Sequence record: AP018399.1
Direction: 5' to 3' (one strand)
DNA length: 64,000 nt
Shown: positions 23,301 through 64,000 of the stretch, piece by piece
How the letters are laid out: each line of letters begins with the position of its first letter
Numbering within the stretch: position 1 is the stretch's first letter
Program-made: the position numbers and the translations under genes
Notes under the pieces: generated by a model
Seen by the model: the letters and a program-made list of their open reading frames with translations, nothing else
Told to the model about the DNA's origin: nothing
Database searches by the model: none

Positions 23301-26300
23301 GATGCTTATACTCAGACCAACGGCTTCCGTTACCGTAACATCAACGGTGAGAACTACGACGCCACAACTGGATTGAACAACAACTGGCAGACTGTAACCG
23401 AGAAGTTCATCAACTGGCTATATGCCCTACGTAACTTCCAGCAGGAAACCATGCTGTCTTATAAGGTCACTGGCAATGCGTCAAACGACTCGCTAGTGAT
23501 GCTAAACGGCACGGTTCCAAACTGGCAAAACGGTACACCGGTCATCTTGTTGGATGATGCTAACTCAACGCTACCAGCAGAGTTCAACAACCCGCTATCG
23601 TCAATCATCCCTTACTACGTAATTCGTGTACAGGGAAGCCTAACTGAGTTCAAGCTAGCCGCTACGGCGTATGATGCTGCGCGTGGTAATGCCATCCCAA
23701 TGACCGACAGCGGCGTTGGTGCATTCCGTGTGCAGGTTTACAAGGCCGTGTCTCAGTACCCAACTTACGAGTTGAACCCATTCAAGCATTACATTTGGGT
23801 TCACCATGAGCAGGGTGTCCTATCGAACGTGTTGGACGATGACTACACTGACCCAACCAGCGCAGCCCGTCTATACGATAACAACGGTATCGAATTGACC
23901 ACGGCCAACGTACTTGTGTTCCGTGAAGACAAGGAAAGTCGTATCTCCCTAACCGAAGATACGATTGCCCAGAACCGTCTAGCCGAAGAGCAGAACAAGC
24001 CGACAATGCATATGTCGGGTATGCACCTGTTCTTCGACGGCTACGAACACATGATTCGTTTCAACGATTACTCGGTTGACAATTCGCTAATCTACGACTC
24101 GTTCCTAGGCTTGAACACTCCACGCTTCTACGTGGAATTCGACCGTCAGCAAGACTTCACCCTACGTCCTAACGTGGGTGGTTTCTACATGCTAGGCGAA
24201 AGCTTGGTTCAGAACTTCGAATCGACAGTCAACGACATGCGTTACTACTACGACAGCGTGAAGGCACCGGAAGGTCGCGTCACAACTGACCTAGTTCGCA
24301 AGTCGCTTGGCTACGATGGTCCGAAGGACTACATGAGCGACCTAAAGATTAACCCGAAGACACAGTTCCAGTTCTGGCAGGCTATGATTCAGAACAAGGG
24401 TACGAACCGTGCGGTCCGTGCTTTCACGAACCAGTCAATCTTCGACTCCGCTGTGGTTGACGAATTCTGGGCTTATAAGCTGGCTGAATTCGGTGACAAC
24501 AAGGAACGTAATTACATTGAAATGAAGCTCTTCCCATCTGACGTGGTGAAGAACGACCTACGTATCGAATTCATTGCTCCTGAGAATGCTGCCATCGACA
24601 GCACCTTCACTGGTGTTGAACTAACGGACATGAACCGTTGGTGGGACCAGCCAGACCAGATTGAAGCAATGCGTCCATACGAAGCGTTCTTCTTCAACAC
24701 GAAGGTGAGCAGCATCATCGACAACATCGCGTCGGTTGTCCAGCGTATTGACAACCGTATCATTTACGTATTCAACGATTTTGTTGATAGCGTGGTGATG
24801 ACGTACTTCGACCCAACTACTCAGACAACCAAGGTGTTGAACGAGGGCGTTGAGTATCGCTTCCTAAACTCAAAGGTAATTGAGTTCCTAATCGAACCGG
24901 GCGTTCTACCGCCGATTACTGCCAGCACGTTGTCTTACGACTACGACGCCCAGAATCCGGCCAAGCTAATCGACAAGGACGCTGGTATTGTCCTAGCTAC
25001 TGTTCCATTCTGGCACCCGGCTATCGGCCAATACTACAACGTACCGTACTACGCTGTTGACCTACGTCGTCCAACCGACCCGGCAATCTACACGACTTCG
25101 CTAGATGGTGGTAACACCGGTAGCGCAACGTGGAAGAAGAACCATGTCGGAACCGTGTGGATGGATAGCAGCATCGAACAGTACCTACCGTACTTCGACA
25201 AGACTGTATACCCAGCTATCAACGACCGTATCAACAAGTGGGGTAAGCTAGCTGATTGGGCTGATATCAACCTGTACCAGTGGACCGAATCTACCGTCCC
25301 ACCGGAATCATATGATGAATTGGCACGTCGCCAGTCATTCGATATGTCCATTCCGGACGAAGACAAGGCAACTGGTGAAACCTACAAGTTGCTATACCAG
25401 AACGTCAACTACGATAGCCCGGACGATGTGGACGCACCGCCATTCTGGATTCAGATTCAGGATACACACTACGACTTCATCGCTGGTCTAAGCTCACAGG
25501 GCATGGATACAACGTTGGCTGGTAAGAAGGCCGAAATCTTCATCAACGGTAAATTCCTAGAAGCAATCACGTTTGAAGACGCTCAGGCTGTACACGCTTA
25601 CTTCGCACAGTTCAACTTCGGTGACTACTGTCACGCGATTGTTCGTGCCCATGTTCCGACCGCTGACGAAATTCAGGCCGGTGCGTATGCGTACTACACA
25701 CCACACAGCATCGAAAAGCGTTTCGATGTGAAGTCGGGTACGACATACAATGTCTACTACTATTGGGTCAAGGACAAGAAGCAGCCGGTATCACCATTGG
25801 CTACCAGCGTTTCTCTATACTCGGCCAAGAAGCAGCTTGTCGATATGTCCGACCCGTACATGATTCTACAGGGTGTACGTACTCCGGACTTCGGTTACGG
25901 CCTAATCTTCGGTCACGTATTCGATGAATTCGCTTACAATCTACCTTACCGCTACACCCAGATGATTGCCAAGGGTCTACATGGCACAGTGAAGGACAAC
26001 AACCGCACGGTTATGCGTTTCACTCGTGACTTCACCCTACGCGACAAGCTGGACAAGGACAGCATCACTCCGAAGAACAAGCATGAAGAGTGGAAGCTAT
26101 TCCGTGAGCAGCAGCTAGAGAAGGTTGACCGCTACCTATGGAACAAGGTGACTGAGGCTCTAATCGGCTTCAAGTTGAACCTAGACGCTACAGCAGCGAC
26201 CGATGAGGCCATCCCATCGTTGAACCGAATCCTATTCGACCGTATCTACCAAGCTGATACTCAGTACGGTATGGGCGACGAACAGGTATTCACCAACAAG

Positions 26301-27311
26301 GACTTGTCACGCCAGACCATCCTAGCGGTCCTAACCGACCCTAACCGTGAGTTTGAATACGTAAACATCGAAGAGTTCCTAGCACGCCATGACTTCCTAA
26401 CACCGGAAGATATCATCGCTGCCATGAATGAAATCTACTTGAACTTCTCAGTGTCAGAAGTCAACACGATTTTCTTCGCGGTCCTACACGATGCTATGAG
26501 CTTGAAGATGGAACATTCTGAAATCTTTAAGACTTCGTGGGTTGCTCTACAGATTTCGCAGAATGTCGTACCGTCGATTCCGATGCCATATGACGAGCTA
26601 CGTCTAGTTCCGGGTCCAGACTGTGCGGCTCCACCGCCGTCACCGTCTCCGACACCAACACCGACAACTACGCCGCAGCTAAGCCCAACACCTACTCCGA
26701 CACCGGACACCTGTGGCAACGGTCCAGATGACCGTATCCTTGAAGATGGTGAGGGACGTATCACGGAAGACGGTCAGTGCCGTATCGTTGAACCGTATGT
26801 GCCAGAGCCTACTCCGACACCTACACCAACACCTACACCGATTCCTCAGTGTGGCGATGGCGACGATGACCGTGTAACAGAAGACGGTGAAGGTCGCATC
26901 ACCGAAGATGGTGAGTGTCGCATTGTGGAACCAGTGGTTAATAATCGCCAGATTGTAGGTACGATGTATGTCTATGACATGGGAGAAGGTGGTCAAAATC
27001 TATGGATAGCAACCACCGAAGGCTATTGTGGTCCAGAGGTTATTACATCACTGGAAGCCGTGGGGGACTATGTAACCGTTGACCCTATCAATGACACATG
27101 GGATTGTCCAGTTACCGACCAAGAGTTCAATGACCCGGTTACATACTCAATCATTCTAGGACCAGAAGTTCCGGAAGGAAATGGTAATTGGGTGGCAAAT
27201 ACGGGCGCATTGAGCGGTTACAGCCCATCGTCTCGTCAATATGTAATGGAATTGATTGTGAATGGAACTGACACAATTTATGTGTGGATGGTAATTTCCG
27301 AGGGTGTATGA
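17370..27311 (+). CDS. Giant baseplate wedge/structural protein (gp7-like position), 3313 aa, C-terminal Pro/Thr tracts
   Basis: Uninterrupted ORF after gp6; GTG start with AGGA RBS and TAAATA at 17335-17340. Confidence 0.7.
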   Translation: MADNNSDYKKTNFNLNDFLPETNKGEFLDSLNKNLFNRYLTKDEFDHIVGIIGDADPNDKVTKPIKERTAFRQDNQLQPVVTEKIGSVNHFMGFEDFMTRIGRTGVDTEKFDQWGNALQFNWVPPIDLDKIVNYRDYYWNSTANPDHAIPQYIVIKSQKNWTAARYVQALKTIVDITGVVPVESFDIPTQKLMLPGNVASSYVAGNHLVLSQADGSLQLVTIASATYNFASTKTEIATVESFTLSSAANLSVYISPVELPVVSISGENLTLNGNFTNLLIEGYVVGVNTNPARLYTVKTSTFDTVTNVTTVTLDGLTVVGFNTLSLYPALALIQAEAEFTADNDTSYPTGGWDNNNIGKIFWYRNTEILNGTQGSTSLGSNILQDLTKNYLVFGIQNTDELQINVGNKNAGKYTINSVTPTTIQTNSGQFFSASTISYRVIRPFSFESISDSTPPLSPSLNQMWYNTATDTLSQWNGSTWNLVYIGISNLAKLVNDRIVTNFSNENDWSDDNEWVHTSQITEFTGMIRAQMPIIEYFPYLDMSETSYSEKVWRYRKDDALSYVDSAVGPKMIELMNFTYSGSEFTFPDVNTMQFDQKFGNFVGELEVGDEVVLSGFTQNDGIYTIATKEYYQPGPGQRYVSRITFTTPIISTTDLPMGANFGPYLTSNGDLFAGLDAKQWEFGGVQDIRASSLAPTKNPMLDVNVATGTSNGFEWILGLNSQTYSSQGNIVVEPTFFFDTSLHDLVLYDDYQEGDIRVYINGKRVYGAFEDLASWVDPDYVGGIKFINGYTVYASDIVRIELGEYAIEDIGLRAILVNTPIGNELYNLTNVRKIEQRKSESNQYPYFALRDIYGERLNLATSIFKYAESESSAINANVLKRIVTNGDGTDYTFVQELKDPATGRLYCYYDYQEVGDELQTIWKHGTYSEQYVPTKVDGAWEMPNQWYYNISHDNYTEVKLTEIFRHFKSIIDLQEQPGLFSKTAGLFFLDDQINYGVGGTIKEHNDGFDTLVSSIFVNNGNPTTIINFAKNEYDNQVRYVKERYYQEAADLFSNTALNVSDLQAAITESLINSVENNGKFDQWFGDTTSYDAATALGVRNWIATLPQFGLQPRSVPFSVQDSSLGMYEVHCHDGHVTNVAFNPAMTEQLVRRITANNPSISQVVASEAVPFPTDYEGNPLSTGIYLIRTNTTARTRKLYRFGGAAVWELVDVNAIFANTILEIENRLYAVAPEVFDARYDFTDVEADPAFEDLMEVQFLEYTRLEGISTPLNNSDRFRQNNPFTWNYYYSPIQNDPLTGLVSYNTAGTWQALYENVFGTAYPHLEPWVLQGYDNKPSWWDAQYADTTGSRRWTLTMWSNVFDGIIPVGQTAPNGNPGTGTVGQITNRFSYLPVNTGSVETDDGYGLDAILPPYWNTVNTTDARIRGLYDPNAGELVTTPQLNFEFGQNGLVEWEWRQSLSYLYDRMVVAYKIDPMRFMHETFGIDYQIVSCLQISKESEKVFSHKDTIFHGDFIDATNNIYKAYGLNQWYVHYQRYSGFDGISSEFRSLWKDWDTDLAYLVGAFLDTPSFSIESDFFDITTKDYEIAVKKTKGIADEWLTSLTATVLNVPSPYAKLRDQGIGWTVEISDNCPVARPIQYHPTQNYSVNVNTSGQPFRIFSYPLKGIELVPARGFQTVTYNSPVAMSSSTGLNPATTYTFEVEFNQTTLANATVLGSDAQTFGDLFNVLADQIGTAGSFGIENGNVVVYSASNAPTSSVVITDNTVFAATSGFVQLETPASTPNKFDGAFRIEGNFYSTFVDAGQITITYSTLFNGTYTIDRVYYDATTYQTLIFVKENVTLPSTGSVLVDGLLEPLNAKTLPPEWTTGTEVYFNTTGYLPNNFDDEVPYYVIRLSDREFRVAETKDAALKGVYVTPTSNALGEVFIGKILMTFQALGGQLTTYNWRHHAVDYRYVDSSSSNLMISGIQQVVDFLTGYDAYTQTNGFRYRNINGENYDATTGLNNNWQTVTEKFINWLYALRNFQQETMLSYKVTGNASNDSLVMLNGTVPNWQNGTPVILLDDANSTLPAEFNNPLSSIIPYYVIRVQGSLTEFKLAATAYDAARGNAIPMTDSGVGAFRVQVYKAVSQYPTYELNPFKHYIWVHHEQGVLSNVLDDDYTDPTSAARLYDNNGIELTTANVLVFREDKESRISLTEDTIAQNRLAEEQNKPTMHMSGMHLFFDGYEHMIRFNDYSVDNSLIYDSFLGLNTPRFYVEFDRQQDFTLRPNVGGFYMLGESLVQNFESTVNDMRYYYDSVKAPEGRVTTDLVRKSLGYDGPKDYMSDLKINPKTQFQFWQAMIQNKGTNRAVRAFTNQSIFDSAVVDEFWAYKLAEFGDNKERNYIEMKLFPSDVVKNDLRIEFIAPENAAIDSTFTGVELTDMNRWWDQPDQIEAMRPYEAFFFNTKVSSIIDNIASVVQRIDNRIIYVFNDFVDSVVMTYFDPTTQTTKVLNEGVEYRFLNSKVIEFLIEPGVLPPITASTLSYDYDAQNPAKLIDKDAGIVLATVPFWHPAIGQYYNVPYYAVDLRRPTDPAIYTTSLDGGNTGSATWKKNHVGTVWMDSSIEQYLPYFDKTVYPAINDRINKWGKLADWADINLYQWTESTVPPESYDELARRQSFDMSIPDEDKATGETYKLLYQNVNYDSPDDVDAPPFWIQIQDTHYDFIAGLSSQGMDTTLAGKKAEIFINGKFLEAITFEDAQAVHAYFAQFNFGDYCHAIVRAHVPTADEIQAGAYAYYTPHSIEKRFDVKSGTTYNVYYYWVKDKKQPVSPLATSVSLYSAKKQLVDMSDPYMILQGVRTPDFGYGLIFGHVFDEFAYNLPYRYTQMIAKGLHGTVKDNNRTVMRFTRDFTLRDKLDKDSITPKNKHEEWKLFREQQLEKVDRYLWNKVTEALIGFKLNLDATAATDEAIPSLNRILFDRIYQADTQYGMGDEQVFTNKDLSRQTILAVLTDPNREFEYVNIEEFLARHDFLTPEDIIAAMNEIYLNFSVSEVNTIFFAVLHDAMSLKMEHSEIFKTSWVALQISQNVVPSIPMPYDELRLVPGPDCAAPPPSPSPTPTPTTTPQLSPTPTPTPDTCGNGPDDRILEDGEGRITEDGQCRIVEPYVPEPTPTPTPTPTPIPQCGDGDDDRVTEDGEGRITEDGECRIVEPVVNNRQIVGTMYVYDMGEGGQNLWIATTEGYCGPEVITSLEAVGDYVTVDPINDTWDCPVTDQEFNDPVTYSIILGPEVPEGNGNWVANTGALSGYSPSSRQYVMELIVNGTDTIYVWMVISEGV
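26712..26933 (+). repeat. Two 28-aa Cys-flanked acidic repeats separated by a PT linker
   Basis: CGNGPDDRILEDGEGRITEDGQCRIVEP (26712-26795) and CGDGDDDRVTEDGEGRITEDGECRIVEP (26850-26933). Confidence 0.9.
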
Positions 27312-27829
27312 TTGATGTGCATGTCCTAACCATGAGGAATCATCCGCCGTATGGGCGGCGGGAGAATCTTCCTTATATTCTGGACGCACTTTCCAGAGAG
27401 CCAGTCAACGTTCATCTAGTGGACGTTGACCAAATTGGTAATGAAACTGCCATGAGAATAAAGGCTCTACAGAAGGGTACCTCAGAATGGGTCGGGTGGG
27501 TTGACCCGGATGATGAAATCATTCCGGGTGCTTACCAGATGCTACTTGACCACAAAGGTAATACGTCATTCGCATGGTCAAATGAACTTGTCAATTCATT
27601 TGACCGAAATGGAAAATTGGTAAGTACGACAGTTTACCGCGAGCCGCATCACATGATGATTATTCATCGTGATGTTCTTGACCTAGATTATCTCGCAAAA
27701 CGAGAATTCGCAACAGTCATTGGACTCCATCCTCTTATGAAGATTGGAACCCATGTAAATGAAATTGGATATGTCTGGAATCGTCATCCTGATTCCGACT
27801 GTGAAGTAGCCAAACGCCTATATAAATAA
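27308..27829 (+). CDS. Small GT-A (GT2-like) glycosyltransferase
   Basis: Beta-strand start IDVHVLT, RIKALQKGTSEWVGWVDPDDEI (DxDD motif); ATG 27308 overlaps the TGA of the giant protein. Confidence 0.65.
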   Translation: MIDVHVLTMRNHPPYGRRENLPYILDALSREPVNVHLVDVDQIGNETAMRIKALQKGTSEWVGWVDPDDEIIPGAYQMLLDHKGNTSFAWSNELVNSFDRNGKLVSTTVYREPHHMMIIHRDVLDLDYLAKREFATVIGLHPLMKIGTHVNEIGYVWNRHPDSDCEVAKRLYK

Positions 27830-27849
27830 CATCAAGGAACCCTAAAACC

Positions 27850-28563
27850 ATGTCCCAACGTATCAGTGACCTAACCCCCGTTTCAAGTATTGCCGGTGAC
27901 GAGCTAGTTGAAGTTGCCGTTCCCAATAGTGAATCTCCGACCGGATATGTAAGCCGCTCGGCAAGTACCTCCCTATTCGGTGGCGGTGGTGGACTACCAT
28001 ATCGCTTTACTTTCGAAATCAACGACGAGCCTATCGGCAGTGACCTATCATTCCAATTGTATTTGGAAAAGGGACAGTTTGATAGTACAGCATTCCGCCC
28101 AAATGCAGATTCGGACCCTGATGGTGACTGGACCCTAGCTACTGCTATCATGAATTTCAATGCTATTGCTGGCTTCCATTTCTCTTCGGAAGATAACTTC
28201 CAGTTTTACGCATTTTCACCGCTTAATTCATCGGTATGGGTAAACAAGATGGGCGGCGCTCTAGGAAGTGGTGCTGACTCGGATGCTGACCAGTTGCGTT
28301 GGGGTACATTCAATAACAGCAATGACCTATCAATTTACCAGATTCCCGATAACTACCCATCAAGCAACTACATGAATAACACTCCGGTAATTGCTCCGGT
28401 TGAAGTTTATGAAGATGGTAACTTCGGTCCGGACGGTTCTATTGTGATTCGCTTCCGCGTTGTATCTCCGTATAATGGATGGGGTACATACCCACAGACA
28501 TTCAGCCTCAAAGGATACGCCGATATTAACATGGCATTCAGCAACTTCTATCGTCCGGCATGA
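27850..28563 (+). CDS. Putative tail fibre/appendage protein
   Basis: N-terminal RISDLTPVSSIAGDELVEV fibre-type motif; exact TATAAATA at 27821-27828. Confidence 0.5.
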   Translation: MSQRISDLTPVSSIAGDELVEVAVPNSESPTGYVSRSASTSLFGGGGGLPYRFTFEINDEPIGSDLSFQLYLEKGQFDSTAFRPNADSDPDGDWTLATAIMNFNAIAGFHFSSEDNFQFYAFSPLNSSVWVNKMGGALGSGADSDADQLRWGTFNNSNDLSIYQIPDNYPSSNYMNNTPVIAPVEVYEDGNFGPDGSIVIRFRVVSPYNGWGTYPQTFSLKGYADINMAFSNFYRPA

Positions 28564-29228
28564 TTTTAAATTTTGAAGGACAGCACTCAGGGGACGTGAT
28601 TATGGCATTGCCGGTAATCACGTCCCTTCGGCTTTCCGGGGTAGACGTTAAAATTTATGTAGCCGAAGACTACAGGTATCTTCTAACAGGGCTTGGTCTG
28701 GAATATGTAAGTGAACCTATTGGCCCTAGGCTATCAACCCAAAACATTACCGGCCACGCTACTGAATTCTGGTTGGATTACTTCCGAGTAGAGCCGGTGA
28801 AGATGGACGTTCCGACTCTTCCTGCTACACCAACGGTGGTACTATCTCCGGATGCTCGTACACACGTTCGTAGATTTCCAAATGAATTCTGGGAAGCGAT
28901 TGTATGGTGGTGTAGTGACCGGAACCTGCCAGTGACGGTGATTGGTCCCAAGGATGCTGTCAAACGTAACGCATTCCTAAGCGGCCCAAACGTCACCAAC
29001 CTCACGGGTGAGCAGACGATTGAAGAAACCTACGCGACGCTGAAACATGCTCTGGCGGTCGTTACGACGGACACCGGAACATCACATCTATCCGATGCTT
29101 TGAACGATGTAACGGTCACAGCATTCCGTGTAAATAATGATGAAAAGTTTGCGCCATATTGGAATCGGAGAGTCGTGAAAGACTTATCCGGTGCGATAAA
29201 GCACCTTGAAACATTGATAAATAAGTGA
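28560..29228 (+). CDS. GT9 (heptosyltransferase-like) glycosyltransferase
   Basis: SGDVIMALP..., NLTGEQTIEETYATLKHALAVVTTDTGTSHLSDAL (D.G..H.A motif); ATGA overlap with upstream gene. Confidence 0.8.
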   Translation: MILNFEGQHSGDVIMALPVITSLRLSGVDVKIYVAEDYRYLLTGLGLEYVSEPIGPRLSTQNITGHATEFWLDYFRVEPVKMDVPTLPATPTVVLSPDARTHVRRFPNEFWEAIVWWCSDRNLPVTVIGPKDAVKRNAFLSGPNVTNLTGEQTIEETYATLKHALAVVTTDTGTSHLSDALNDVTVTAFRVNNDEKFAPYWNRRVVKDLSGAIKHLETLINK

Positions 29229-29247
29229 ACTAACCAAGGTTGAAGAA

Positions 29248-30456
29248 ATGTCGAACCCCGTAACACTAAATCTGCCAGTTCAGATTGACACTCGTGTCAT
29301 CATTTCGAACGCTGAAACTGGCGAAGTTCTGGTTGATAAGCCGAACTCAATCCACAGCCAGAACATGGCTCGTGTTCTAGCCCGTGGCCTTGCTCGTGAA
29401 GCCAACTATTACATTCGCCGCATGGCATTTGGTAACGGTGGTACATTCCGTGACGCTGCTGGTAACCTAGTCTACAACCCGCCGAATGACGGCCGTGACG
29501 GTAGCTGGGAATCTCGTTTGTATAACGAAACTTATTCCGAAATCATTGACGACTCTGACCCGCTATTCGGTGAAGACCCCGGTTCAGCCGAATCAGGTAA
29601 TATTCGTCCGGGTGGCGGTGCAATCCCGACCGACGACCCGACTGGTGCCGGTGTGGTGTCACAGGAAGTTGGTACCAAGTCCAACGTCATCTGTACTGTT
29701 TATTTGAATAACAACGAACCAATGGGTCAGGTGGATTCACACTACGACCCGGCCACGATTGCCAACCCAGACAACCGCTGCTTCCAGTTCGATGAACTTG
29801 GCCTATACAGCCCCGGCGCTCCGGCAACAGCCACTAACGGCTATTCGTCCGTAAACGTCAACGACGCGACCTCTGAGACGGCTACCACGCTGGCTCCTAA
29901 TACAACCTACCAGATTTCCATTGACGTTGACGGAATCACGTACAGCGCGATTCTGACGACTCCGGGCGGTGGTTCAGGTCCGACCAGCCAGTTCACCTAC
30001 GGTGATATCTGTGAAGGTATCAACACCGGCTCATGGATTACTGGCGGTGACCCAATCAATGACGTTGTGTACGTCTACATCACCGACCGTTCAGGTGGTA
30101 CGTACCCAACCATCATCGGCAAGCAGTCCTACGGCTTCCTACTGTTCCAGAGCAAGACCCTTGGTGCAGGCTCAAGTGTGAACCTGAACTGTTCAACTGC
30201 CAGCCCAACCAATTTCTTCAATGTTTTGACAAGTGGTTCATGTGTTAACGTGAATGTCAATCAGGAACAGGGTGAAAATGCTGGTGTTGCGAACGACCCC
30301 ACAAATCCGAGCAACGAACGCGAACGCCTCTTGACACATCTGATTTTTGACCCTATCCTTAAGTCCACATTCCGCTCATTGAAGATTGTGTACATACTAA
30401 CGGTATCAGTTCCTAAGACTACGGATAGTCAGACAGAAGTGGTAACAGGGGCATAA
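29248..30456 (+). CDS. Putative baseplate/fibre-attachment structural protein
   Basis: MAFGNGGT...RLYNETY...FDELGLY...LLTHLIFDPILKS; TAAATA at 29218-29223. Confidence 0.55.
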   Translation: MSNPVTLNLPVQIDTRVIISNAETGEVLVDKPNSIHSQNMARVLARGLAREANYYIRRMAFGNGGTFRDAAGNLVYNPPNDGRDGSWESRLYNETYSEIIDDSDPLFGEDPGSAESGNIRPGGGAIPTDDPTGAGVVSQEVGTKSNVICTVYLNNNEPMGQVDSHYDPATIANPDNRCFQFDELGLYSPGAPATATNGYSSVNVNDATSETATTLAPNTTYQISIDVDGITYSAILTTPGGGSGPTSQFTYGDICEGINTGSWITGGDPINDVVYVYITDRSGGTYPTIIGKQSYGFLLFQSKTLGAGSSVNLNCSTASPTNFFNVLTSGSCVNVNVNQEQGENAGVANDPTNPSNERERLLTHLIFDPILKSTFRSLKIVYILTVSVPKTTDSQTEVVTGA

Positions 30457-30480
30457 GGTTAGTGGTTTTTCCTTCATGCA

Positions 30481-30547
30481 AGAAAATGTCCGCGAAAGCG
30501 GACATTTTCTTTTGTGCTAAACAAAATGTCCGCTTTCGCGGACATTT
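30481..30547. terminator. Bidirectional terminator formed by two inverted copies of one GAAA hairpin
   Basis: AGAAAATGTCCGC-GAAA-GCGGACATTTTCT then AAATGTCCGC-TTTC-GCGGACATTT, between convergent operons. Confidence 0.85.
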
Positions 30548-30550
30548 ATG

Positions 30551-32191
30551 TTAGTTCTTGTAGTGTTCATTCTCTCGTCGGGTCTTCCCGTCGTAATGGT
30601 ACACGCGATTGTGGTTGATGACCGTCGCTAGCAGGCTACCGACCTTCAACTTCCCTTCACGCATGTGCATCATGGTCTGGCTCATCCAAGTCTGTTCATA
30701 AAGGTGAGCGTACTGGACTTCCTTGAAGACGACCTGTGTACCCTTCTTCGTGAACATGATAGGCCAGTTGCAGTAGTGGTATTCACCTACTGCGTATGGC
30801 AGACCCTTATGGCTGTTGGTGTAGAACACCTTGGTCGCCCAATTCTCACCACCCTTCTCCGGTTCCGGGAAGTATTCCTGACGCTTGTGTTCGGGAAGAT
30901 TCTTGTAGGCCCAATTGTGGTGGTTGTCACCATAGAACTCGGTGAAGGCAAGCTTCAAGTAATCTAGCTGCTCATTCTTCATGATATCCATGCACTTGTC
31001 GAACACGTCATCGTGGAAGGTTGTGAAACCCATCTTACACGGAGCCGCACCACGCTGCTGCATTAGCATGTCGTCTTCGAAGAACACCATGTAATTGTGC
31101 TTGGATTCTAGGAAGTGTTCTGCTGCGAACTGACGACCGCCATTGATGCCGATGTTGTCCTTCTTGAACTCTTCGAAACCATACTTCTCAAACAATGCCT
31201 TGTACTTCTTGTCTACACGCTTGTCGGTGGAGTTGTTGATAACGTACTTACGAACCTGTTTGAACACGTCTGGGAACGCCGAAATGAATGACTCAGCCCA
31301 TAGTTCAAACTGCTGTGGTAGATTATAAGTTAGCACGTATACGGCTAGTTCCTCTTCCACGTCCGGCAAGGGTCGGTCTTTTAGGTCTTGTAGGTAACGG
31401 TAAACTAGACCGTTGCTCTCAATCATACGTACATTCACCTTTTCTGGATGCTTGTATGCGATGATAGTGAAGATGGATTCCTCGGTACCCATCAATCCCT
31501 GATTCAACGAGTCGTTCAACAAACCGTAGTAGATATCGTTGATATCGTTGATTATGTGCTTCGGACCACCGAAGATACCACCACGGCACACGTACTGCGT
31601 ATCAGCACCGGCCATACGGTTCATGGCATTCTTTTCAAAGCCGTGAACTTCTAGGGTACCGTCATACGGGAACGCGACGTAGAGCATCTTGTTCATGTCC
31701 TGCGTAACGCGACGTTCGAAGTCAGCGTCCAAGTAAGCAGTAGGGTCGCCAATGGTATTTGCAATACCGGCGTCAATCCATAGGTAATACTTGGTGTCGA
31801 AGAAGTTGAAGTGGGTAGCGTCGTTCAAGAAGAACTGCTTGGACATTACAAGTGGGTTGTATAGCTCAAGCTTGGCCTGAGTGGAGTCCGGTAGCCAACC
31901 TGCGTAATTGAACCACTTCTCATCGGTACGAATCTTTTGTACTTGGTCGTAGAACGGGAACGCACGAAGGTCATCCAGCGTCTTGAAAATCAGACGGGTG
32001 TTCTCCTGCTTACGATACTTCCAGATGGTTTCTGCGAGCTTTTCTTCACAGTAGATTACCATCGGATAATCCACCTTCAATAGCTTGCTGAACGACTCAA
32101 CGTAGTGGTCGAACGAACGCTTGAAGCCGGAATCCAAGTCTCCGCGACCAAGGTCAAATAGGGCTGTAACTAGGGTAAGATTGCCGGCCAT
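30551..32191 (-). CDS. HtrL/YibB-family glycosyltransferase-like domain fused to a GT-A (GT2-like) domain
   Basis: LTLVTALFDLGR, YLWIDAG, GGIFGG, GTEESI; second domain AVYVLTYN...YVINNSTD...NIGINGGRQ...MVFFEDDML. Confidence 0.75.
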   Translation of the reverse strand: MAGNLTLVTALFDLGRGDLDSGFKRSFDHYVESFSKLLKVDYPMVIYCEEKLAETIWKYRKQENTRLIFKTLDDLRAFPFYDQVQKIRTDEKWFNYAGWLPDSTQAKLELYNPLVMSKQFFLNDATHFNFFDTKYYLWIDAGIANTIGDPTAYLDADFERRVTQDMNKMLYVAFPYDGTLEVHGFEKNAMNRMAGADTQYVCRGGIFGGPKHIINDINDIYYGLLNDSLNQGLMGTEESIFTIIAYKHPEKVNVRMIESNGLVYRYLQDLKDRPLPDVEEELAVYVLTYNLPQQFELWAESFISAFPDVFKQVRKYVINNSTDKRVDKKYKALFEKYGFEEFKKDNIGINGGRQFAAEHFLESKHNYMVFFEDDMLMQQRGAAPCKMGFTTFHDDVFDKCMDIMKNEQLDYLKLAFTEFYGDNHHNWAYKNLPEHKRQEYFPEPEKGGENWATKVFYTNSHKGLPYAVGEYHYCNWPIMFTKKGTQVVFKEVQYAHLYEQTWMSQTMMHMREGKLKVGSLLATVINHNRVYHYDGKTRRENEHYKN

Positions 32192-32194
32192 TGC

Positions 32195-32935
32195 TTAAAT
32201 AATCCTCATAATTTTGTCGTGATGTAGATACCTAAATGTATGTAGAACTGGATTTGTTCGCATGAAATTCAGGATGGGTGTATTGGGTAGATTCGACTCA
32301 CTCATGGCGTAAGAAATCTCCAAAGCTTCAATGAACGGGTTGATTCCTCGGTCATGGCAGCGCTTGGTAATCTCAACCCATGTGTCCATGAATGTCTTGA
32401 ATTCCGGACAATTTGGCTTGAAGAACATGAACACTTCGATGGGCATCTTGGCCTTAATCTTATTCATGTCGATACTCAACGCCTGAGCCTTCGGGTCCAG
32501 TAGGAACGCGATACCACCTTCCTCGCATGGACGATTGCGGAAGCGAGCGATTAGACCCTGTTCCGGCTGTGCGATGAAGTTCTGGAAGTCTTCTTCGTCC
32601 CAGCCAATCAGGAAGCCGTCAGCATCCGAATGGATAATCATGTCGTAACCGCCACGTTCGTATGCTACCTTCGTAGGTAGAATCTTCAAATTGAAGTTGA
32701 ACATGCGTTCAGCAAACCAAATGTTTTGGTCAGACACCGACTTGAATTCCACGATATGGATTCGGTTGGCGTCAAGTTCCGGATGCTCATTCACGTAGGT
32801 CGTCAATTCCTTAACATCATCGGTGATGACAATCACATCACCCTTGGTTAGAAGGTTGACGCAATCAATCAGAGTGCGGACTTTGTAATTGTGTTCCACG
32901 CCAAGGGCGAGGCTTGCGAATGCATACTTATGCAC
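32195..32935 (-). CDS. GT-A-like glycosyltransferase (DxD)
   Basis: VIVITDD, FNFNLK, IIHSDADGFL; co-transcribed with the GT cluster. Confidence 0.55.
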   Translation of the reverse strand: MHKYAFASLALGVEHNYKVRTLIDCVNLLTKGDVIVITDDVKELTTYVNEHPELDANRIHIVEFKSVSDQNIWFAERMFNFNLKILPTKVAYERGGYDMIIHSDADGFLIGWDEEDFQNFIAQPEQGLIARFRNRPCEEGGIAFLLDPKAQALSIDMNKIKAKMPIEVFMFFKPNCPEFKTFMDTWVEITKRCHDRGINPFIEALEISYAMSESNLPNTPILNFMRTNPVLHTFRYLHHDKIMRII

Positions 32936-33788
32936 GAATCACCTTAAAGAAATCTGAGAACGCTACGTGAACGTTCGGGTCGTACAGGTCAATCGGCCAG
33001 TCGTCATGGTACCAGCTATTGAACTTGAAATTTGTGTAAAGCTCTGGCTCACGCTGGTGAAGGTAGTACATGATTTCCTCTTCCTTGAGAAGAACGTCAT
33101 GGTCAATCACAAGCTGCATGTGCGTCGTTGCCTTGCCGATGTAATCCAACAGTACGTCACGCTTGCCGCCGAAGATACCGCCGATTACGGCGTATTCTGG
33201 ACGGTCTGGGTAGACTTGTACGTAATCGTCAGAGCCGTGGTTCACGGTCTGTGACAGGATATTCAGCACCTTGTCGCCAGCGTGCTTGTTCAGGTCTTCA
33301 AATAGATTACGCTTCTGGTTGATGAGGTCGAAATCGTAGAACGACTTACTCTCTGGACTACGGAACTTATTGGTAATCAGGCCACCGTGGAAGATACCGG
33401 CATCAATCCAGTACAGGCTATCGCCAGCTTCTAGCTCCGTGGTATTCTTCCAGAGCCAGTAGAACTTACCCCACATGATTTCCACACAGCGGGAACGCCA
33501 TGCATCTTCGGTAGTGTACTTCGCCTTACGGTCCTTGATGGCTTCAATCTGCTGATGGAAGTAGTTCTCGGATAGTTCCTCGACAACCAACTTGACATTC
33601 GGATGATTCTCAAACCAATTGGTCAAGTCTTCCAGATGCGCAGAAGCAGTATAGCAGACGATGGAGTAGCCACCGTCTGCCAGAGAGCGAAGCGAAAGTT
33701 TGTAGCGGTCATAGATGGCCGCTGTGTTACCGTTATATCGTGTGCCCTCTAGTCCAGTATAGATTGCAGTTACGAATTGGGGCTTCAC
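32928..33788 (-). CDS. HtrL/YibB-family glycosyltransferase-like protein
   Basis: FVTAIY, MWGKFYWL, LYWIDAGI, GGIFGG, EEEIM; paralogue of 30551..32191. Confidence 0.7.
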   Translation of the reverse strand: MKPQFVTAIYTGLEGTRYNGNTAAIYDRYKLSLRSLADGGYSIVCYTASAHLEDLTNWFENHPNVKLVVEELSENYFHQQIEAIKDRKAKYTTEDAWRSRCVEIMWGKFYWLWKNTTELEAGDSLYWIDAGIFHGGLITNKFRSPESKSFYDFDLINQKRNLFEDLNKHAGDKVLNILSQTVNHGSDDYVQVYPDRPEYAVIGGIFGGKRDVLLDYIGKATTHMQLVIDHDVLLKEEEIMYYLHQREPELYTNFKFNSWYHDDWPIDLYDPNVHVAFSDFFKVIRA

Positions 33789-33790
33789 GG

Positions 33791-36088
33791 TTATTCCTCT
33801 ATCAATTTAACCTTGTCTACTGCGCCTAGAATGGCTGGGGCTAGGTATTCATGGTCTAGGTTACTGACCTTGCCTAGCTGGCAGTACCATAGGTACATTG
33901 CCTCCCACTGATTGCTTAGCCATTCTACATTTTCAAAATTGCCACCGAAGAACTTCACTGATGGGTGTAGTTCGCCCATACCACGACCGAACTTGTCACT
34001 CAACCACTTCTCATCGAATGTCGTGTTGACGATATCACGCTTAGCCGATAGGATTAGGTGTGAATTGTTCTGCGACATTGTAATTAGATTGTTCAAGTCC
34101 TTCTGGAAGGTCGCCGGGTCGAACTGAGCTAGGTCAACGAAGACGTGGTGTGAAGCCATGTAGCGGTCTTCGTTCAACGCTTCCTTCGTCCATAGCAGAC
34201 GAATCTTGTCATAGGCACCAACGACCGTCTTCTCTCCGTGGTAGTTCTTGAGGTACACATGACGCGGTTCCACAGTGTAGACATGGAAGCCAGTCAGGTC
34301 ATGCTTAGCCTTGGTGGACTCTTCGGTGATGATGACTACATTGTCCTTACCACGTAGAGCCGCTAGGTTCTTGGCAATCGTTTCGTGCTGGTCCGGAGAC
34401 TGTTCGAACACGAACGCATTGACGCCCATTCCTGCGCGAGCCTTCTTCGAAGTGAATACCGGCGAACGCTTGAACTTACGGGCATCCTTCTTCTTGAAGA
34501 TGAGGTTACCCTTGTAGTAGATAGCGTCCATTTCCGAGTTGTCTAGGATGGAGAATGCATCCGATAGACGGGTCAGAATTGGCTTACCATTCACGTTGAA
34601 CGAAGTGTTCAAGATGACAGCATGACCGGCGTGCTTTTCGAACTCGGTGATTAGGTCATAGATTAGTTCGTTCTGTAGACGGGTCACCGTCTGTAGACGA
34701 GCCGTACCGTCCGTGTGGGTGATGGCCGGGAGCGTTGCCTTGTACTCTTCACGCACGTTGGCGACGAACGTCATATGACGCGACTCAACGTTGTAGTCGT
34801 AGTGGAAATACTTGTTGGCATCCTCTAGACGCACGATAGGAGCGAACGGACGGTACCATTCACGATGCTTGACCTTGTGGTTCAGCACATCCTTCATGTC
34901 GCCTGACGGGTTACAGATGATTGAGCGATTGCCTAGCGCACGCGAACCATGTTCCGAATTACCTTGGATTAGACCGACGATGTTGTTGTCAGCCACGAAC
35001 TCAGCAAGCTCCTGAACCGTCACGTTCTCGTAAACGAAATACTTTGACTGGTCCTGAATGTAGGTTGAGAATTCCTTGTCGTCCAGAATCGGTAGACCGG
35101 AGTAGGTCAGGTCAACCGGGTACTTCGGAGCGATGTGCCATAGCAGGCCACCAGCGGAGATACCACAGTCGCTAGTGTTCGGCGGAACGAAGACGTTACC
35201 ACCCTTGATTTCAAGCAGACGAGCGTTCAGAAGAACGTTCAGACCACAACCACCAGACACGACTAGCGGAATGTGACTGTACTGTTCTAGGAACGGCCCT
35301 GCCAATTCAAGGAAGACTTCCTCAAAGGCTTTCTGGGTCGTAGCAGCGATATCCCAAGCGACCTGACCGCTAAAGCGCGTCTTTTCAAAGTCAAATCCTT
35401 CGAATAGACCGATAGCGGTTAGTAGGTCGGTGACAGCCTTGGTTCGCAGTTCTAGACCACCGATGTAGGAGTCTCCACTGTATACGAATTGCTTGTAGTA
35501 GTGTTTGAAGGCATCCATCCACTCTTCGCGGACGGTACCATACGAGCATAGACCCATCAGCTTACCGGCATACACAAGGTTGCCGATGCTCAAGGAATCT
35601 CGCTTGATATCCTCAAGGTAGTCGGCAAGCAGCATGTATGGGAAGCCAAGGTCATTAGGTAGACGATGGATGAGCTTGATACCTGTGTTTCGGTCAGCTT
35701 CGTAGAAATTGAAGTAGCTACCATCACCGCCACCGTCGAACGAAATGGCTAGAGCCTTGTCGAACGGTGACTGGTAGAAAGCAGCCGCAGCATGTGCAAC
35801 ATGGTGGTCTGCGGCTAGTTGCTTCTTGTACTTGAACTTCGGAACAATCTTGCTCACGTAACCGGTGATGTAAACGTCAACTTCTGTCTTACCAGCCTTG
35901 GCTAGAAGCCAATCGGTAATCTCATCGAACACCACCTGTGGATGTGAACACGGCATGTAATTCACCAAGCCGATGTTCTTTGAGTTCAACCAACGTTCTA
36001 CTTCAACTACAGTGTATTCGCCCTTGTAATACATTGAGATTGCGGCGTTATGGGAACCATACGCCGAAATCACCAGATAATCGTTCAT
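33791..36088 (-). CDS. NodU/CmcH/TobZ-family O-carbamoyltransferase with C-terminal degenerate HtrL-like domain
   Basis: HHVAHAAAAFYQSPF, FDGGGD, GKLMGL, GGCGLN, D.GIS.G, EHGSRALGNRSI, REWYRPFAP, H.DGTARLQTV, LNTSFN..GKPI. Confidence 0.92.
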   Translation of the reverse strand: MNDYLVISAYGSHNAAISMYYKGEYTVVEVERWLNSKNIGLVNYMPCSHPQVVFDEITDWLLAKAGKTEVDVYITGYVSKIVPKFKYKKQLAADHHVAHAAAAFYQSPFDKALAISFDGGGDGSYFNFYEADRNTGIKLIHRLPNDLGFPYMLLADYLEDIKRDSLSIGNLVYAGKLMGLCSYGTVREEWMDAFKHYYKQFVYSGDSYIGGLELRTKAVTDLLTAIGLFEGFDFEKTRFSGQVAWDIAATTQKAFEEVFLELAGPFLEQYSHIPLVVSGGCGLNVLLNARLLEIKGGNVFVPPNTSDCGISAGGLLWHIAPKYPVDLTYSGLPILDDKEFSTYIQDQSKYFVYENVTVQELAEFVADNNIVGLIQGNSEHGSRALGNRSIICNPSGDMKDVLNHKVKHREWYRPFAPIVRLEDANKYFHYDYNVESRHMTFVANVREEYKATLPAITHTDGTARLQTVTRLQNELIYDLITEFEKHAGHAVILNTSFNVNGKPILTRLSDAFSILDNSEMDAIYYKGNLIFKKKDARKFKRSPVFTSKKARAGMGVNAFVFEQSPDQHETIAKNLAALRGKDNVVIITEESTKAKHDLTGFHVYTVEPRHVYLKNYHGEKTVVGAYDKIRLLWTKEALNEDRYMASHHVFVDLAQFDPATFQKDLNNLITMSQNNSHLILSAKRDIVNTTFDEKWLSDKFGRGMGELHPSVKFFGGNFENVEWLSNQWEAMYLWYCQLGKVSNLDHEYLAPAILGAVDKVKLIEE

Positions 36089-36134
36089 TGTGTACCTTTG
36101 AATTGTTTTGACTTAGTATTTACCATTCTGCCAA

Positions 36135-37508
36135 TTAGACTGTAACTGGCTTGGCGATACGATTGCCCCAACCCTTCGACGCACTGTGCGGCCATACGAT
36201 GTACTGCGTAGCAGCCTGATTGCCACGCCAAATTAGGCGGAAGTCAATCCATTCGTTCTGGACGTAAGCCTTGATTTCGTGCGGCTGTGCGTCCTTACGG
36301 AAGATTTCCTTACCCTCTGCGTCAGCCGAACCGACGTACCAGAATGTCATGTCATCCGGTAGCGTTCCGTCTGGGAAGGTTAGTTCGTTGCGGTGGATTA
36401 GAACGCGGATATCATGCGAACCCACGAAGGTTCCCTTCCACTGTTCCTCATTCTCATACACGAAGTCGCCCGGTGGTTCTAGACGGTCGATGGTCTTCTG
36501 CTGAACACCACGGTACTTGAAGCTGATACCGGCGTACTGTTCGTACTCAAGCACGGTGCGTGCAGTACCGAAACCGTACTTGCCGAAATCAATCTGTGAC
36601 GGGTCTTCACCATCCATTCCAAATAGAATGCGGTTACGCTTGTGGCATAGGTCATTACGCTGGACCCAATCTAGCTCCACACGGCCCTTATTCTTCTGTG
36701 CAGTGGTGTGGTCGTCCCAAACCTTGGTACGGCCCTTACGGGTGTACTCGTGCCATGCGATTAGGCGGTGCGGGTGATACAGGTCATAGCCGTGAGTGTA
36801 TGCACGGACAGCGATGGAGATTTCTTCACCGTGGAAGAAGTATTCCGGGTCGTGCTGAACTTCTTCTGCGAAGATGCCATCGGCAAATGCGAAGTGAGCA
36901 GAGAAGAAGCGAGCGCGCATCGGTTCAGTGAGTTCCTTCCAGTTGTCGATAGTTGACGGAATGAAGAACACAGCACCTTCCGGAATGAAGCGGTCAAAGT
37001 CCATCTTCCACGGGTCTTGTACGCGAGCGCCGGGGTCATTCTCTGGGTCGAACGACGGAATGTAAGCGGTTAGAAGCGGCTTCGGTGACTTGGTACGAAG
37101 ACCTTCTAGCATTTCGATAGCGACCTCATCCCAGCCTTCAACGAAGCGGTGGTGAGAGTCAAGCTGCATGGTATACTTTTCCTTGGAGTATAGCTGCTGA
37201 ATCTGGTTACGTGCCCAGCAAGCGCCCTTGGTCTTATGGAAGTGAATGTCGATGACAGACAGCTTGGTGCCTTCTGGGCTTACGACGTTCAGGACAGTCG
37301 CACCACCAACACGCTGGTCTTCGGAAAAGCCTTCAACAACGAAGCCAGCATCTAGGAAAATGTCGGTCGGTTCGTCTTCACCATGCTGCCAGCAGATACC
37401 TACGTGTAGGTTCTCTGGATGCTTGGCGTTCTCAATCATGTTGCGTAGGGTAGGAATCAACTGCGGGTCGCGGTACGCGGCCATCTGAACGTAAATGGTA
37501 TTGGTCAT
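36135..37508 (-). CDS. GT60-like polypeptide/hydroxyproline alpha-GlcNAc transferase (Skp1 GlcNAcT/Gnt1 family)
   Basis: TIYVQMAAYRDPQL, GICWQ, KGACWAR, QLDSHHRF (DxH), KPLLTAY, FSAHFAF, FF.GEEISIAVRAYTHGYDLY.P. Confidence 0.85.
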   Translation of the reverse strand: MTNTIYVQMAAYRDPQLIPTLRNMIENAKHPENLHVGICWQHGEDEPTDIFLDAGFVVEGFSEDQRVGGATVLNVVSPEGTKLSVIDIHFHKTKGACWARNQIQQLYSKEKYTMQLDSHHRFVEGWDEVAIEMLEGLRTKSPKPLLTAYIPSFDPENDPGARVQDPWKMDFDRFIPEGAVFFIPSTIDNWKELTEPMRARFFSAHFAFADGIFAEEVQHDPEYFFHGEEISIAVRAYTHGYDLYHPHRLIAWHEYTRKGRTKVWDDHTTAQKNKGRVELDWVQRNDLCHKRNRILFGMDGEDPSQIDFGKYGFGTARTVLEYEQYAGISFKYRGVQQKTIDRLEPPGDFVYENEEQWKGTFVGSHDIRVLIHRNELTFPDGTLPDDMTFWYVGSADAEGKEIFRKDAQPHEIKAYVQNEWIDFRLIWRGNQAATQYIVWPHSASKGWGNRIAKPVTV

Positions 37509-37570
37509 GAATAGGTTCCTGTAAAAGTTACTCTTTTACTTATTACAAGTGTTTTAACAAGTAATCCATA

Positions 37571-37620: not shown

Positions 37621-37630
37621 AATATCCTTC

Positions 37631-63341: not shown

Positions 63342-64000
63342 TTAGGCACATTCGTTGTCAATACCACCACAACGGCAACCGTTGAAGATTGGAGTACAGT
63401 TCATTGGGCATCCGCAGTTGTCTTCAACTGTGCCACCACAGCCCTGATTTGGTCCGCACTGTGTTCCACCGCCACCCGAAGGCGTCTGTGTAGGTGTGGC
63501 CGAAGGTGCCGGAGTGTTGGATGGAGCCGGAGTGTTGGATGGAGCCGGAGTATTCGAAGGTGCTGGCGTCTGTGTACGTGTTGGTGTCACTGGCGGCGTT
63601 GGTGATGGAGTCACAGCGGCCGTTCGTGTCGGTGTAGCAGTTACCGGTGGGGTCGGTGATGGAGTACGGGTACGTGTCACCGATGGAGTCACCGAAATTG
63701 TTGGAGTAACGCTTGGGGTCACTGTCGCGGTACGGGTCACTGTTGGAGTTACCGTGGCCGTTACAGATGGTGTTGGTGTGTATGTTCTTGTTGGAGTACG
63801 TGTAACCGTTGGAGTCGGCGAAGCCGTCGCTGTTGGGGTAAGCGTTACTGTTGGTGAAACTGTAGCCGTCACGGTAGGAGTAATCGTCTGAGTTACAGCC
63901 GGAGTTGCGGTTGGGCTAGCAGTGGTCGTCACGGTAGGAGTAATCGTAGCCGTGACCGATGGTGTAACCGTTGGAGTTACACCAGAAGTTGGAGTCACAG
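63342..64000 (-). CDS. Partial Thr/Pro-rich (mucin-like) protein ending in an 8-Cys mini-domain
   Basis: At least 170 aa of TPTVT repeats, (TPAPSN)x3, GGGG linker, CGPNQGC...CGC..NC...GCRC...EC; open to the window edge. Confidence 0.8.
   Translation of the reverse strand, partial: VTPTSGVTPTVTPSVTATITPTVTTTASPTATPAVTQTITPTVTATVSPTVTLTPTATASPTPTVTRTPTRTYTPTPSVTATVTPTVTRTATVTPSVTPTISVTPSVTRTRTPSPTPPVTATPTRTAAVTPSPTPPVTPTRTQTPAPSNTPAPSNTPAPSNTPAPSATPTQTPSGGGGTQCGPNQGCGGTVEDNCGCPMNCTPIFNGCRCGGIDNECA

Follow-up and report, generated by a model that had tools for sequence, protein, structure and literature searches.

The window analyzed in the present study, a stretch of 64,000 nucleotides (nt) equivalent to AP018399.1 186001-250000, belongs to Xanthomonas phage XacN1, a jumbo myovirus of Xanthomonas citri with a genome of 384.7 kb (Yoshikawa et al., 2018, PMC5852040). 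The region of interest within it, 10.9 kb in length and 100% identical to XacN1 AP018399.1 212631-223508, carries genes annotated as open reading frames ORF325 to ORF334 (Table 1), among which is a cluster of sugar-adding enzymes that is real and more than a chance assemblage. On the plus strand, genes for a baseplate hub, a gp5-like spike with a lysozyme domain (ORF321), an M23 peptidase, and the baseplate wedge are followed by ORF325 and then by ORF326-329. ORF334-330 are located on the minus strand, convergent with ORF326-329, and close a long leftward block in which genes for a structural protein, head completion, DNA polymerase, RNase H, and a NUDIX protein come before ORF334. An initial annotation, made from the letters of the window, had placed the glycosyltransferase-like genes and the carbamoyltransferase gene at the end of the baseplate operon, which is correct for the plus arm after the wedge genes and ORF325, but not for the minus arm, which follows the replication module. 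We consider it probable that the cluster represents a phage-encoded cytoplasmic O-glycosylation system for proline/threonine (Pro/Thr) tracts of phage proteins and that the glycan is carbamoylated in XacN1.

The first gene of the minus-strand cassette, ORF334, encodes a member of glycosyltransferase (GT) family 60, since the protein matched PF11397 ("GlcNAc", GT60) at profile positions 1-350 of 352 with an E-value of 3.2e-77 and 260.8 bits, above the curated Pfam cut-off of 21. Its predicted structure has a GT-A fold of moderate confidence (predicted local distance difference test score, pLDDT, 72), with a conserved beta-rich domain of approximately 120 amino acids (aa) at the C terminus. Residues D117-S118-H119, which are invariant in 16 sequences with 62-81% identity, presumably correspond to the Asp-x-His/Asp metal-binding motif of GT60-type enzymes. 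Searches of PDB sequences with ORF334 alone and with a 16-sequence profile yielded no match; mucin-type polypeptide N-acetylgalactosamine (GalNAc)-transferases were among the best structural matches of the model. The likeness to GT27 structures was at the level of the GT-A fold only (template modeling score 0.41-0.42, 12% identity), and neither a GT27 nor a ricin match was detected in Pfam; ORF334 may work like the GT27 mucin-type GalNAc-transferases, yet it is not a member of that family. The GT60 enzymes that are named as characterized in PMC6939170 are polypeptide alpha-N-acetylglucosamine (GlcNAc)-transferases.

Regarding ORF333, which had been described as a NodU-type carbamoyltransferase, the family assignment stands because the protein contains both Carbam_trans_N and Carbam_trans_C (E-values of 4.8e-27 and 4.6e-57), and TobZ, NovN, and GdmN were its closest solved structures (up to E 1e-45). 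Orthology with NodU itself was not supported, the score against the NodU equivalog NF041651 being 177.6 bits with a cut-off of 1000. The C-terminal approximately 230 aa of ORF333, overlooked in the initial annotation, are probably an HtrL-like domain, as suggested by a profile comparison in hhalign (78.6%, E 1.7e-5). The gene that closes the cassette, ORF330, had been read as encoding two domains, and this is borne out by an AlphaFold model with two tandem GT-A domains (pLDDT 89.6). Residues 5-254 matched HtrL_YibB (PF09612; E 2.5e-21, 76.9 bits with a cut-off of 24.1), and the model aligned over its whole length, across more than 600 columns, with LH3, K4 chondroitin polymerase (K4CP), COLGALT1, and PmHS2. 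In NCBIfam, the YibB equivalog thresholds were reached by neither ORF330 nor ORF332.

Comparisons with related loci distinguished a conserved core from a variable set of genes. More than 6000 homologues of ORF334 were found, thousands of them metagenomic, and in the best 120, which lie on contigs as long as 389 kb, identity over the full length is 56% or higher. A GT60 relative of ORF334 is encoded on at least 562 IMG/VR contigs, and the cultured phages with a homologue are XacN1, Xoo-sp13, RAS14, and CM1 only. The distribution of ORF330 resembles that of ORF334, and both proteins are conserved at 55-80% identity over their full lengths. After dereplication at 90% GT60 identity, 104 GT60 loci remained, 93 of which have an ORF330-type protein and 30 an ORF332-type protein. 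Conversely, of 79 loci in a scan anchored on the carbamoyltransferase subfamily of ORF333, 75 have GT60 at a distance of at most 10 kb and 77 have an ORF330-like protein. GT60 leads a same-strand cassette that is usually closed by an ORF330-type gene, and the genes that follow it in relatives include those for a GT10 fucosyltransferase, a pyruvyl transferase, CmcI and FkbM methyltransferases, a sulfotransferase, and a carbamoyltransferase, together with further GTs (GT2, GT25-like, GT34, and PLOD-GT). Because the set of enzymes after GT60 changes, the expected product is an oligosaccharide that begins with the same step throughout and is then extended and decorated in a lineage-specific manner. 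Judged from gene content, GT60 and ORF330 form the conserved core, with ORF330 as the partner of GT60 and the presumed extending enzyme, and the remaining genes form a swappable decoration set.

The connection with Pro/Thr tracts emerged from the gene order of the same 104 loci. Tract ORFs occupied positions -1/-2 of GT60 in 31 of 196 cases and other positions in 49 of 1671 (odds ratio 6.2, Fisher p 7e-12, a p-value that overstates independence because the loci are phylogenetically related, although the effect is a large one). In a second synteny group, the gene order of which is unrelated to that of XacN1, many loci have a same-strand Pro/Thr-tract gene directly upstream of GT60. Nucleotide composition does not drive the tracts because loci with a GC content of 30-37% also contain them. 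Within 20 kb of the tail sheath gene, three tract ORFs, a homologue of ORF369 among them, are present in each of the GT60-bearing phages Xoo-sp13 and RAS14, and none were found in the four GT60-lacking phages RsoM2USA, PA5oct, Atu_ph07, and Bellamy, the first three of which were classed as GT60-lacking by their absence from the cultured-phage matches. Tail-sheath-anchored regions were used for this comparison because the carbamoyltransferase-anchored scan, in which nearly all loci have GT60, was unfit as a GT60-negative control. The co-occurrence of GT60 and tracts that had been proposed as a check received support from the sixfold upstream enrichment and from the GT60-lacking phages, but it did not extend to approximately half of the loci, as discussed below.

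Homologues of GT60 were also detected in 35 bacterial species, and the association with tracts recurs in clusters of the type VI secretion system (T6SS). In Achromobacter (locus L204, 13055-15538; L numbers denote the loci compared herein), the tract ORF near GT60 encodes a VgrG spike (E 4e-163) that ends in a Pro/Thr tail of 130 residues. Large ORFs at the equivalent place in Paraburkholderia, Paraherbaspirillum, and a second Achromobacter locus, which are candidate VgrG genes, end in Pro/Ser/Glu or Thr/Pro repeats. Besides L204 and the Cupriavidus locus described below, the bacterial GT60 loci in T6SS clusters included L193, L198, L202, and L178.

XacN1 itself encodes an ample set of candidate acceptors. 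The initial annotation had pointed to three proteins with Thr/Pro tracts, all three of which are real; however, a whole-genome scan revealed at least 16 XacN1 proteins with Pro/Thr tracts of 45-400 residues, including ORF174, ORF180, ORF190, the six paralogues ORF232-237, ORF325, ORF350, ORF369, ORF370, ORF372, and ORF384, a protein of 2823 aa. Lys and Arg do not occur in the tracts. In the mechanism that we propose, ORF334 would place the first sugar on Thr (or Ser) of the Pro/Thr tracts in the cytoplasm, and, by analogy with the GT60 family, this sugar would be an N-acetylhexosamine from a host uridine diphosphate sugar. No genes for nucleotide-sugar synthesis are annotated in the window, as had been noted, or in the whole XacN1 genome. 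ORF330 would then add the next sugars using its two GT-A domains, while ORF332, the C-terminal domain of ORF333, and perhaps ORF331, ORF326, and ORF328 would add lineage-specific sugars, and the TobZ/NodU-type domain of ORF333 would O-carbamoylate a sugar hydroxyl. The tracts would function as stalks or linkers in many XacN1 proteins, several of which are encoded in the tail, neck, and baseplate modules. Thr is favored over hydroxyproline because the sole 2-oxoglutarate oxygenase found, ORF200, is of the AlkB type. The donor sugar, acceptor residue, order of the steps, and site of carbamoylation in this scheme are those that we infer, and the benefit to the phage may be protease resistance, stiff extended stalks, or a variable surface.

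A number of observations weigh against this scheme. A tract gene is adjacent to GT60 in none of the 27 XacN1-type loci, and approximately half of all GT60 loci have no tract ORF within 10 kb. Within XacN1, the tract proteins ORF232-237 and ORF384 are outside obvious structural modules, the tract of ORF350 is missing from the closest relatives Xoo-sp13 and RAS14, and the late-promoter-like motif TAAATA is absent upstream of ORF334. Moreover, the teichoic-acid GTs TarS, TarP, and RmlT were also among the best PDB matches of the ORF334 model, such that the fold leaves the class of acceptor unfixed. The Schiff-positive virion bands described below may likewise reflect host lipopolysaccharide (LPS) or polysaccharide that was co-purified and detected by the carbohydrate stain, and a glycolipid case has been shown in another phage. 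The idea of a glycan coat on the tracts, as put forward in the initial annotation, persists in a modified form: it gains from the genomic link between GT60 and the tracts, the T6SS context, and the published Schiff bands, but loses ORF326-328, which are outside the core, and the conservation of the ORF350 tract.

The most serious rival, which we nevertheless regard as unlikely, is that the glycan is attached to another acceptor, such as the capsid, the sheath, or ORF329, or that ORF330, like chondroitin and heparosan synthases, polymerizes a polysaccharide that is either free or primed. GT60 and ORF330 are highly conserved and the tracts are variable, which suggests a conserved acceptor, and both the conserved neighbor ORF329 of the XacN1-type phages and the GT60 loci with no adjacent or nearby tract gene point in the same direction. 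On the other hand, a different acceptor would not account for the positional enrichment of tract ORFs beside GT60, the recurrence of the tract association in T6SS clusters, or the lack of tract ORFs in the sampled relatives without GT60. As for a polymer, the two-domain polymerases K4CP and PmHS2 are similar to ORF330, as are the collagen GTs, but no export or polymer-secretion genes were present in the cassettes seen.

It is less probable still that the cluster remodels the host envelope (the LPS core, O-antigen, or exopolysaccharide), possibly against superinfection or for the release of progeny. The GT9 and HtrL/YibB families are known from enterobacterial LPS-core loci, and the carbamoyltransferases of cyanophages are located in islands of nucleotide-sugar and GT genes for which a connection with the cell surface is usually assumed; however, the GT9 protein of XacN1 is truncated and restricted to XacN1, and the core spans phages of 26-50% GC and, therefore, very different hosts and envelopes. 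The best match of ORF328 was reported to be a Xanthomonas protein (PMC5852040), a point in favor of this possibility, while the characterized GT60 enzymes named in PMC6939170 act on polypeptides. In Pfam, PHROGs, and NCBIfam, ORF326-334 included no lipid-carrier transferase, polyprenol-phosphate transferase, flippase, integral-membrane GT, or other Gtr-type or membrane-protein gene, in contrast to Gtr/Wzx/Wzy-type systems, and envelope remodeling leaves the association with tract genes and VgrG tails unexplained. [quoted passage not shown]

Among known systems, the glycosylation of Skp1 in Dictyostelium and Toxoplasma, in which the GT60 enzyme Gnt1 is followed by the bifunctional two-domain PgtA and later by the GT8-type Gat1 (PMC6939170), offers an instructive parallel to the O-glycosylation of tracts proposed here. 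Both would be cytoplasmic protein O-glycosylation pathways in which GT60 acts first and a two-domain GT next, an order that is predicted from the genes in XacN1. ORF373 (AP018399.1 261719-263035, outside the window), annotated as "hypothetical" and located directly after the tract proteins ORF369-372, consists of an O-methyltransferase-like N-terminal domain and a GT8-like C-terminal domain (phrog_1962 glycosyltransferase, E 3e-41), and the best solved match of the latter is the Skp1 galactosyltransferase 6mw5. The differences are also considerable: Skp1 has a single hydroxyproline that is formed by a dedicated prolyl hydroxylase, whereas XacN1 has no enzyme of the prolyl 4-hydroxylase type and its candidate acceptors are long Pro/Thr repeats; the Skp1 enzyme combines GT74 and GT2, whereas ORF330 combines an HtrL-like and an unassigned GT-A domain; and the Skp1 pathway involves no carbamoylation.

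In functional terms, the nearest analogy to the "mucin-type" idea is a eukaryotic enzyme that shares the CAZy family GT60 with ORF334 and acts on mucin tracts rich in Thr and containing Pro, but it is a membrane enzyme of the Golgi. In actinobacteriophages, phage GTs modify virion proteins, namely, the capsid and tail tube of mycobacteriophages, in the host cytoplasm. XacN1 is unlike these phages in its enzyme families and its host, and we know of no GT60, two-domain HtrL-type GT, carbamoyltransferase, or Pro/Thr-repeat acceptor described in them. The chlorovirus PBCV-1 and giant viruses resemble XacN1 in having virus-encoded GTs and unusual, decorated glycans on structural proteins, an analogy that was drawn in PMC5852040, but they are eukaryotic viruses with other linkages and enzyme families and often have their own nucleotide-sugar synthesis, of which none is annotated in XacN1. 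With TobZ, NodU, NovN, and GdmN, ORF333 shares both family domains within residues 1-535, but it has an additional GT-like domain at the C terminus. The "Nol-like" carbamoyltransferases of cyanophages are also placed in glycan islands; that of Bellamy, which is not among the four cultured phages with GT60, contains nucleotide-sugar genes and no Pro/Thr-tract ORF in a region of approximately 41.5 kb.

The glycosylation of the virion by XacN1 GTs is not a new concept because it was published in outline in 2018: ORF328 and ORF334 were named glycosyltransferases, at least two Schiff-positive bands were found among the virion proteins (Supplementary Fig. S4), and the phage GTs were proposed to make virion glycoproteins, as in PBCV-1 (PMC5852040). 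Virion LC-MS/MS data were deposited with that paper (ProteomeXchange PXD008065, jPOST JPST000339). Its discussion of glycosylation included neither the carbamoyltransferase nor the other GTs or the Pro/Thr tracts. New in the present study are the conserved core, the variable cassette, the upstream enrichment of tracts, and the T6SS/VgrG context; literature searches for published work linking GT60 or PF11397 to phages returned nothing relevant. The glycoproteins stained in 2018 may be the tract proteins, and these bands would be explained if the tracts are glycosylated. Taken together, the action of GT60 on Pro/Thr tracts with carbamoyl decoration has substantial independent genomic support that extends beyond XacN1, and it is presented herein as a prediction from sequence. 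We offer with more reservation, and as a possibility that may well prove too broad, the generalization that tailed phages and T6SS share a widespread, hitherto undescribed O-glycosylation system in which GT60 and its two-domain GT-A partner coat Pro/Thr (Pro/Ser) stalks on the fibers and spikes of contractile injection machines and a swapping set of carbamoyl-, sulfo-, methyl-, pyruvyl-, and fucosyl-transferring enzymes diversifies the glycan between lineages; such a system would represent a counterpart of mucin biology in prokaryotic viruses.

To our knowledge, phage-encoded glycosylation of the virion has been demonstrated in only a few phages, mainly those of actinobacteria, in which it alters antibody recognition. 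If the present interpretation is correct, glycosylated Pro/Thr stalks would be common in large environmental phages, as suggested by hundreds of IMG/VR contigs, and in some T6SS spikes. Pro/Thr "linkers" that are ignored by annotators would become recognizable as substrates of glycosylation, and the protist enzymes could be compared with a branch of GT60 from the bacterial world. The decoration cassette, being hypervariable, would also suggest that the glycan surface itself is under selection, with a bearing on phage adsorption, stability, and recognition.

Table 1. Genes, late-promoter-like motifs, and candidate acceptor proteins of the XacN1 locus, with positions counted from the first nucleotide of the window.
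Feature	Position	Strand	Basis or context
ORF325, 3313 aa, candidate acceptor, after the baseplate wedge genes	17370..27311	+	Tract scan
ORF326, weakly GT2-like, possible GT-A protein with a DPDD motif	27308..27829	+	Sub-threshold Pfam match
TATAAATA, late-promoter-like motif, 27 nt upstream of ORF327	27821..27828	+	Motif count
ORF327, not GT-like	27850..28563	+	Overlaps ORF328 by 4 nt
ORF328, shortened GT9-family protein	28560..29228	+	Pfam, solved heptosyltransferases
TAAATA, 30 nt upstream of ORF329	29218..29223	+	Motif count
ORF329, conserved protein phrog_11259, not GT-like	29248..30456	+	PHROG, synteny
ORF330, two-domain GT, HtrL/YibB-like GT-A and second GT-A	30551..32191	-	Pfam, AlphaFold model
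ORF331, small orphan family, candidate GT-A	32195..32935	-	Invariant DxD
ORF332, single-domain HtrL/YibB-like GT	32928..33788	-	Profile-profile comparison
ORF333, TobZ/NodU-family O-carbamoyltransferase (residues 1-535) and C-terminal domain of ~230 aa	33791..36088	-	Pfam, hhalign
TAAATA, 34 nt upstream of ORF333	36117..36122	-	Motif count
ORF334, GT60/PF11397 glycosyltransferase, presumed initiator, first cassette gene	36135..37508	-	Pfam, model, alignment
ORF350, Pro/Thr-tract protein, candidate acceptor	49607..51571	-	TAAATA 23 nt upstream
ORF369, 3' part (594 aa, runs off the window), candidate acceptor	63342..64000	-	Next to gp15-like tail sheath stabilizer

Six genes of the cluster had been regarded as GT-like. 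ORF334, ORF330, and ORF332 were confirmed as such, as was ORF328 in a shortened form, while ORF326 gave a weak match and ORF331 is a candidate by its DxD motif. ORF332 had no match in Pfam and was connected to the N-terminal domain of ORF330 by hhalign (99.6%, E 3e-24). ORF328 matched GT9 with an E-value of 1.8e-15 at profile positions 104-225 of 247 only, and at 222 aa it is shorter than the approximately 320-350 aa of the family: the donor-binding C-terminal half is retained (residues 82-200 against 171-290 of solved heptosyltransferases), and the N-terminal half has shrunk to approximately 85 aa, such that the complete two-Rossmann GT-B architecture of GT9 is lacking. The match of ORF326 to Glycos_transf_2 (E 1e-3, 19.5 bits) was below the cut-off of 23.3; the protein has 40% identity to an Xoo-sp13 protein and was found in 4 of 85 related loci. 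None of these 85 loci contained ORF328, which is specific to XacN1. ORF326, ORF327, ORF328, and ORF331 are absent or rare outside XacN1, and ORF326-328 are additions specific to XacN1 or Xoo-sp13 that are not part of the conserved system.

ORF331 has an invariant D104-x-D106 preceded by a conserved strand ending in Thr-Asp, and only 78 relatives were identified among 1.84 billion protein representatives. No match was obtained in Pfam, PHROG, NCBIfam, or PDB, the last of which was also searched with a 24-sequence profile, and the distant relatives from the 1.84-billion-protein search have no Pfam domain except for one fused methyltransferase. An alignment of ORF331 in hhalign gave no match line, a comparison that was too insensitive because profiles of this small size missed even the C-terminal domain of ORF330 against GT-A clusters. 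Considering the DxD motif, ORF331 may be a GT-A enzyme. When the Pfam threshold was relaxed to an E-value of 5, no usable match was obtained for ORF326, ORF327, ORF329, ORF331, or ORF332, or for the C-terminal regions of ORF330, ORF333, and ORF334.

ORF327 and ORF329 do not appear to be enzymes as far as can be told from their sequences. ORF327 and its positional counterpart in Xoo-sp13 (L002 21409-22068) are alike in the first 36 residues and unrelated in the rest, as if a distal domain had been swapped onto a conserved N-terminal anchor. The possibility that ORF327 and ORF328 are one split gene was rejected because they are separate frames that overlap. ORF329 is always convergent with the end of the cassette in XacN1-type phages, and the only match of a 12-sequence profile in PDB was to a designed protein and is attributable to chance.

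Regarding the individual tract proteins, the C terminus of ORF325, for which no Pfam family was found, has two short Pro/Thr linkers (approximately 26631-26849) that flank a repeated Cys-containing module, and these linkers are retained in the homologues of Xoo-sp13 and RAS14. The modules (window 26500-27000) are two segments of approximately 27 aa that are Cys-bounded and rich in Asp, Glu, and Gly, each after a Pro/Thr linker. ORF350, which sits between a head-completion gene and a "structural protein" gene, is composed of an N-terminal domain, a tract of approximately 180 aa, a middle domain, and a C-terminal tract of approximately 70 aa. ORF369-372 come after the gene for the gp15-like sheath stabilizer and the sheath gene; in ORF369, a Pro/Thr tract of approximately 230 aa is followed by a Cys-rich end, and its homologues in Xoo-sp13 and RAS14 also have tracts. 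This end (window 63342-63500) is a Gly/Cys-rich module with nine Cys in approximately 45 residues and has no family match. ORF232-237 (AP018399.1 124048-133104; phrog_15511) are six tandem paralogues beside a clamp-loader gene, each with a central Pro/Thr tract of approximately 90 aa.

The motif TAAATA is a genuine upstream element in the window. It occurs in 30 copies with 21.9 expected, 18 of which precede a gene start by 10-45 nt in the orientation of the gene and so account for 18 of the 57 gene starts; control hexamers of the same composition were so placed at most 7 times, barring the overlapping ATAAAT. XacN1 encodes a gp55-type late sigma factor (ORF303). The initial annotation had placed TAAATA late promoters in front of both arms, and this is the case for ORF327 (27823), ORF329 (29218), and ORF333 (36117), but not for the GT60 gene; the motif also precedes ORF324, ORF325, ORF350, and ORF351, and is absent upstream of ORF326, ORF328, and ORF330-332. 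ORF334 must have its own promoter in the divergent spacer 37509-37630. Across relatives, TAAATA was not enriched upstream of GT60 (16% versus 21% for other genes).

In two bacterial loci, the surroundings of GT60 deserve a brief description. A type VI secretion cluster of Cupriavidus sp. OV096 (L199 2849-12136) comprises, in this order, TssF, TssG, TssA, a fimbrial-like protein, GT60, and ClpV. On a 1.17-Mb contig of a Gemmatimonadaceae metagenome-assembled genome (L196 7242-10984), the gene directly upstream of a GT60 and ORF330-like pair encodes a Pro/Thr-tract protein that also has a PqqD-type peptide-recognition domain, which hints at peptide glycosylation in a cellular genome or prophage.

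In XacN1-type phages, the NUDIX hydrolase gene (window 38722-39153; relatives L004 and L006) is a conserved near neighbor of GT60. Terminator-like GC-rich hairpins with T runs are present within 70 nt just upstream of GT60 in L002, L003, L006, L008, L011-L013, L015, L017, L019, and L021, and, because these hairpins precede GT60, the cassette appears to be its own transcription unit after the replication genes. In the second synteny group (L027, L029, L030, L033, L035, L036, L043, and L054), a conserved AT-rich element with a perfect 16-nt palindrome is located approximately 25 nt upstream of the GT60 start and may be a promoter or operator.

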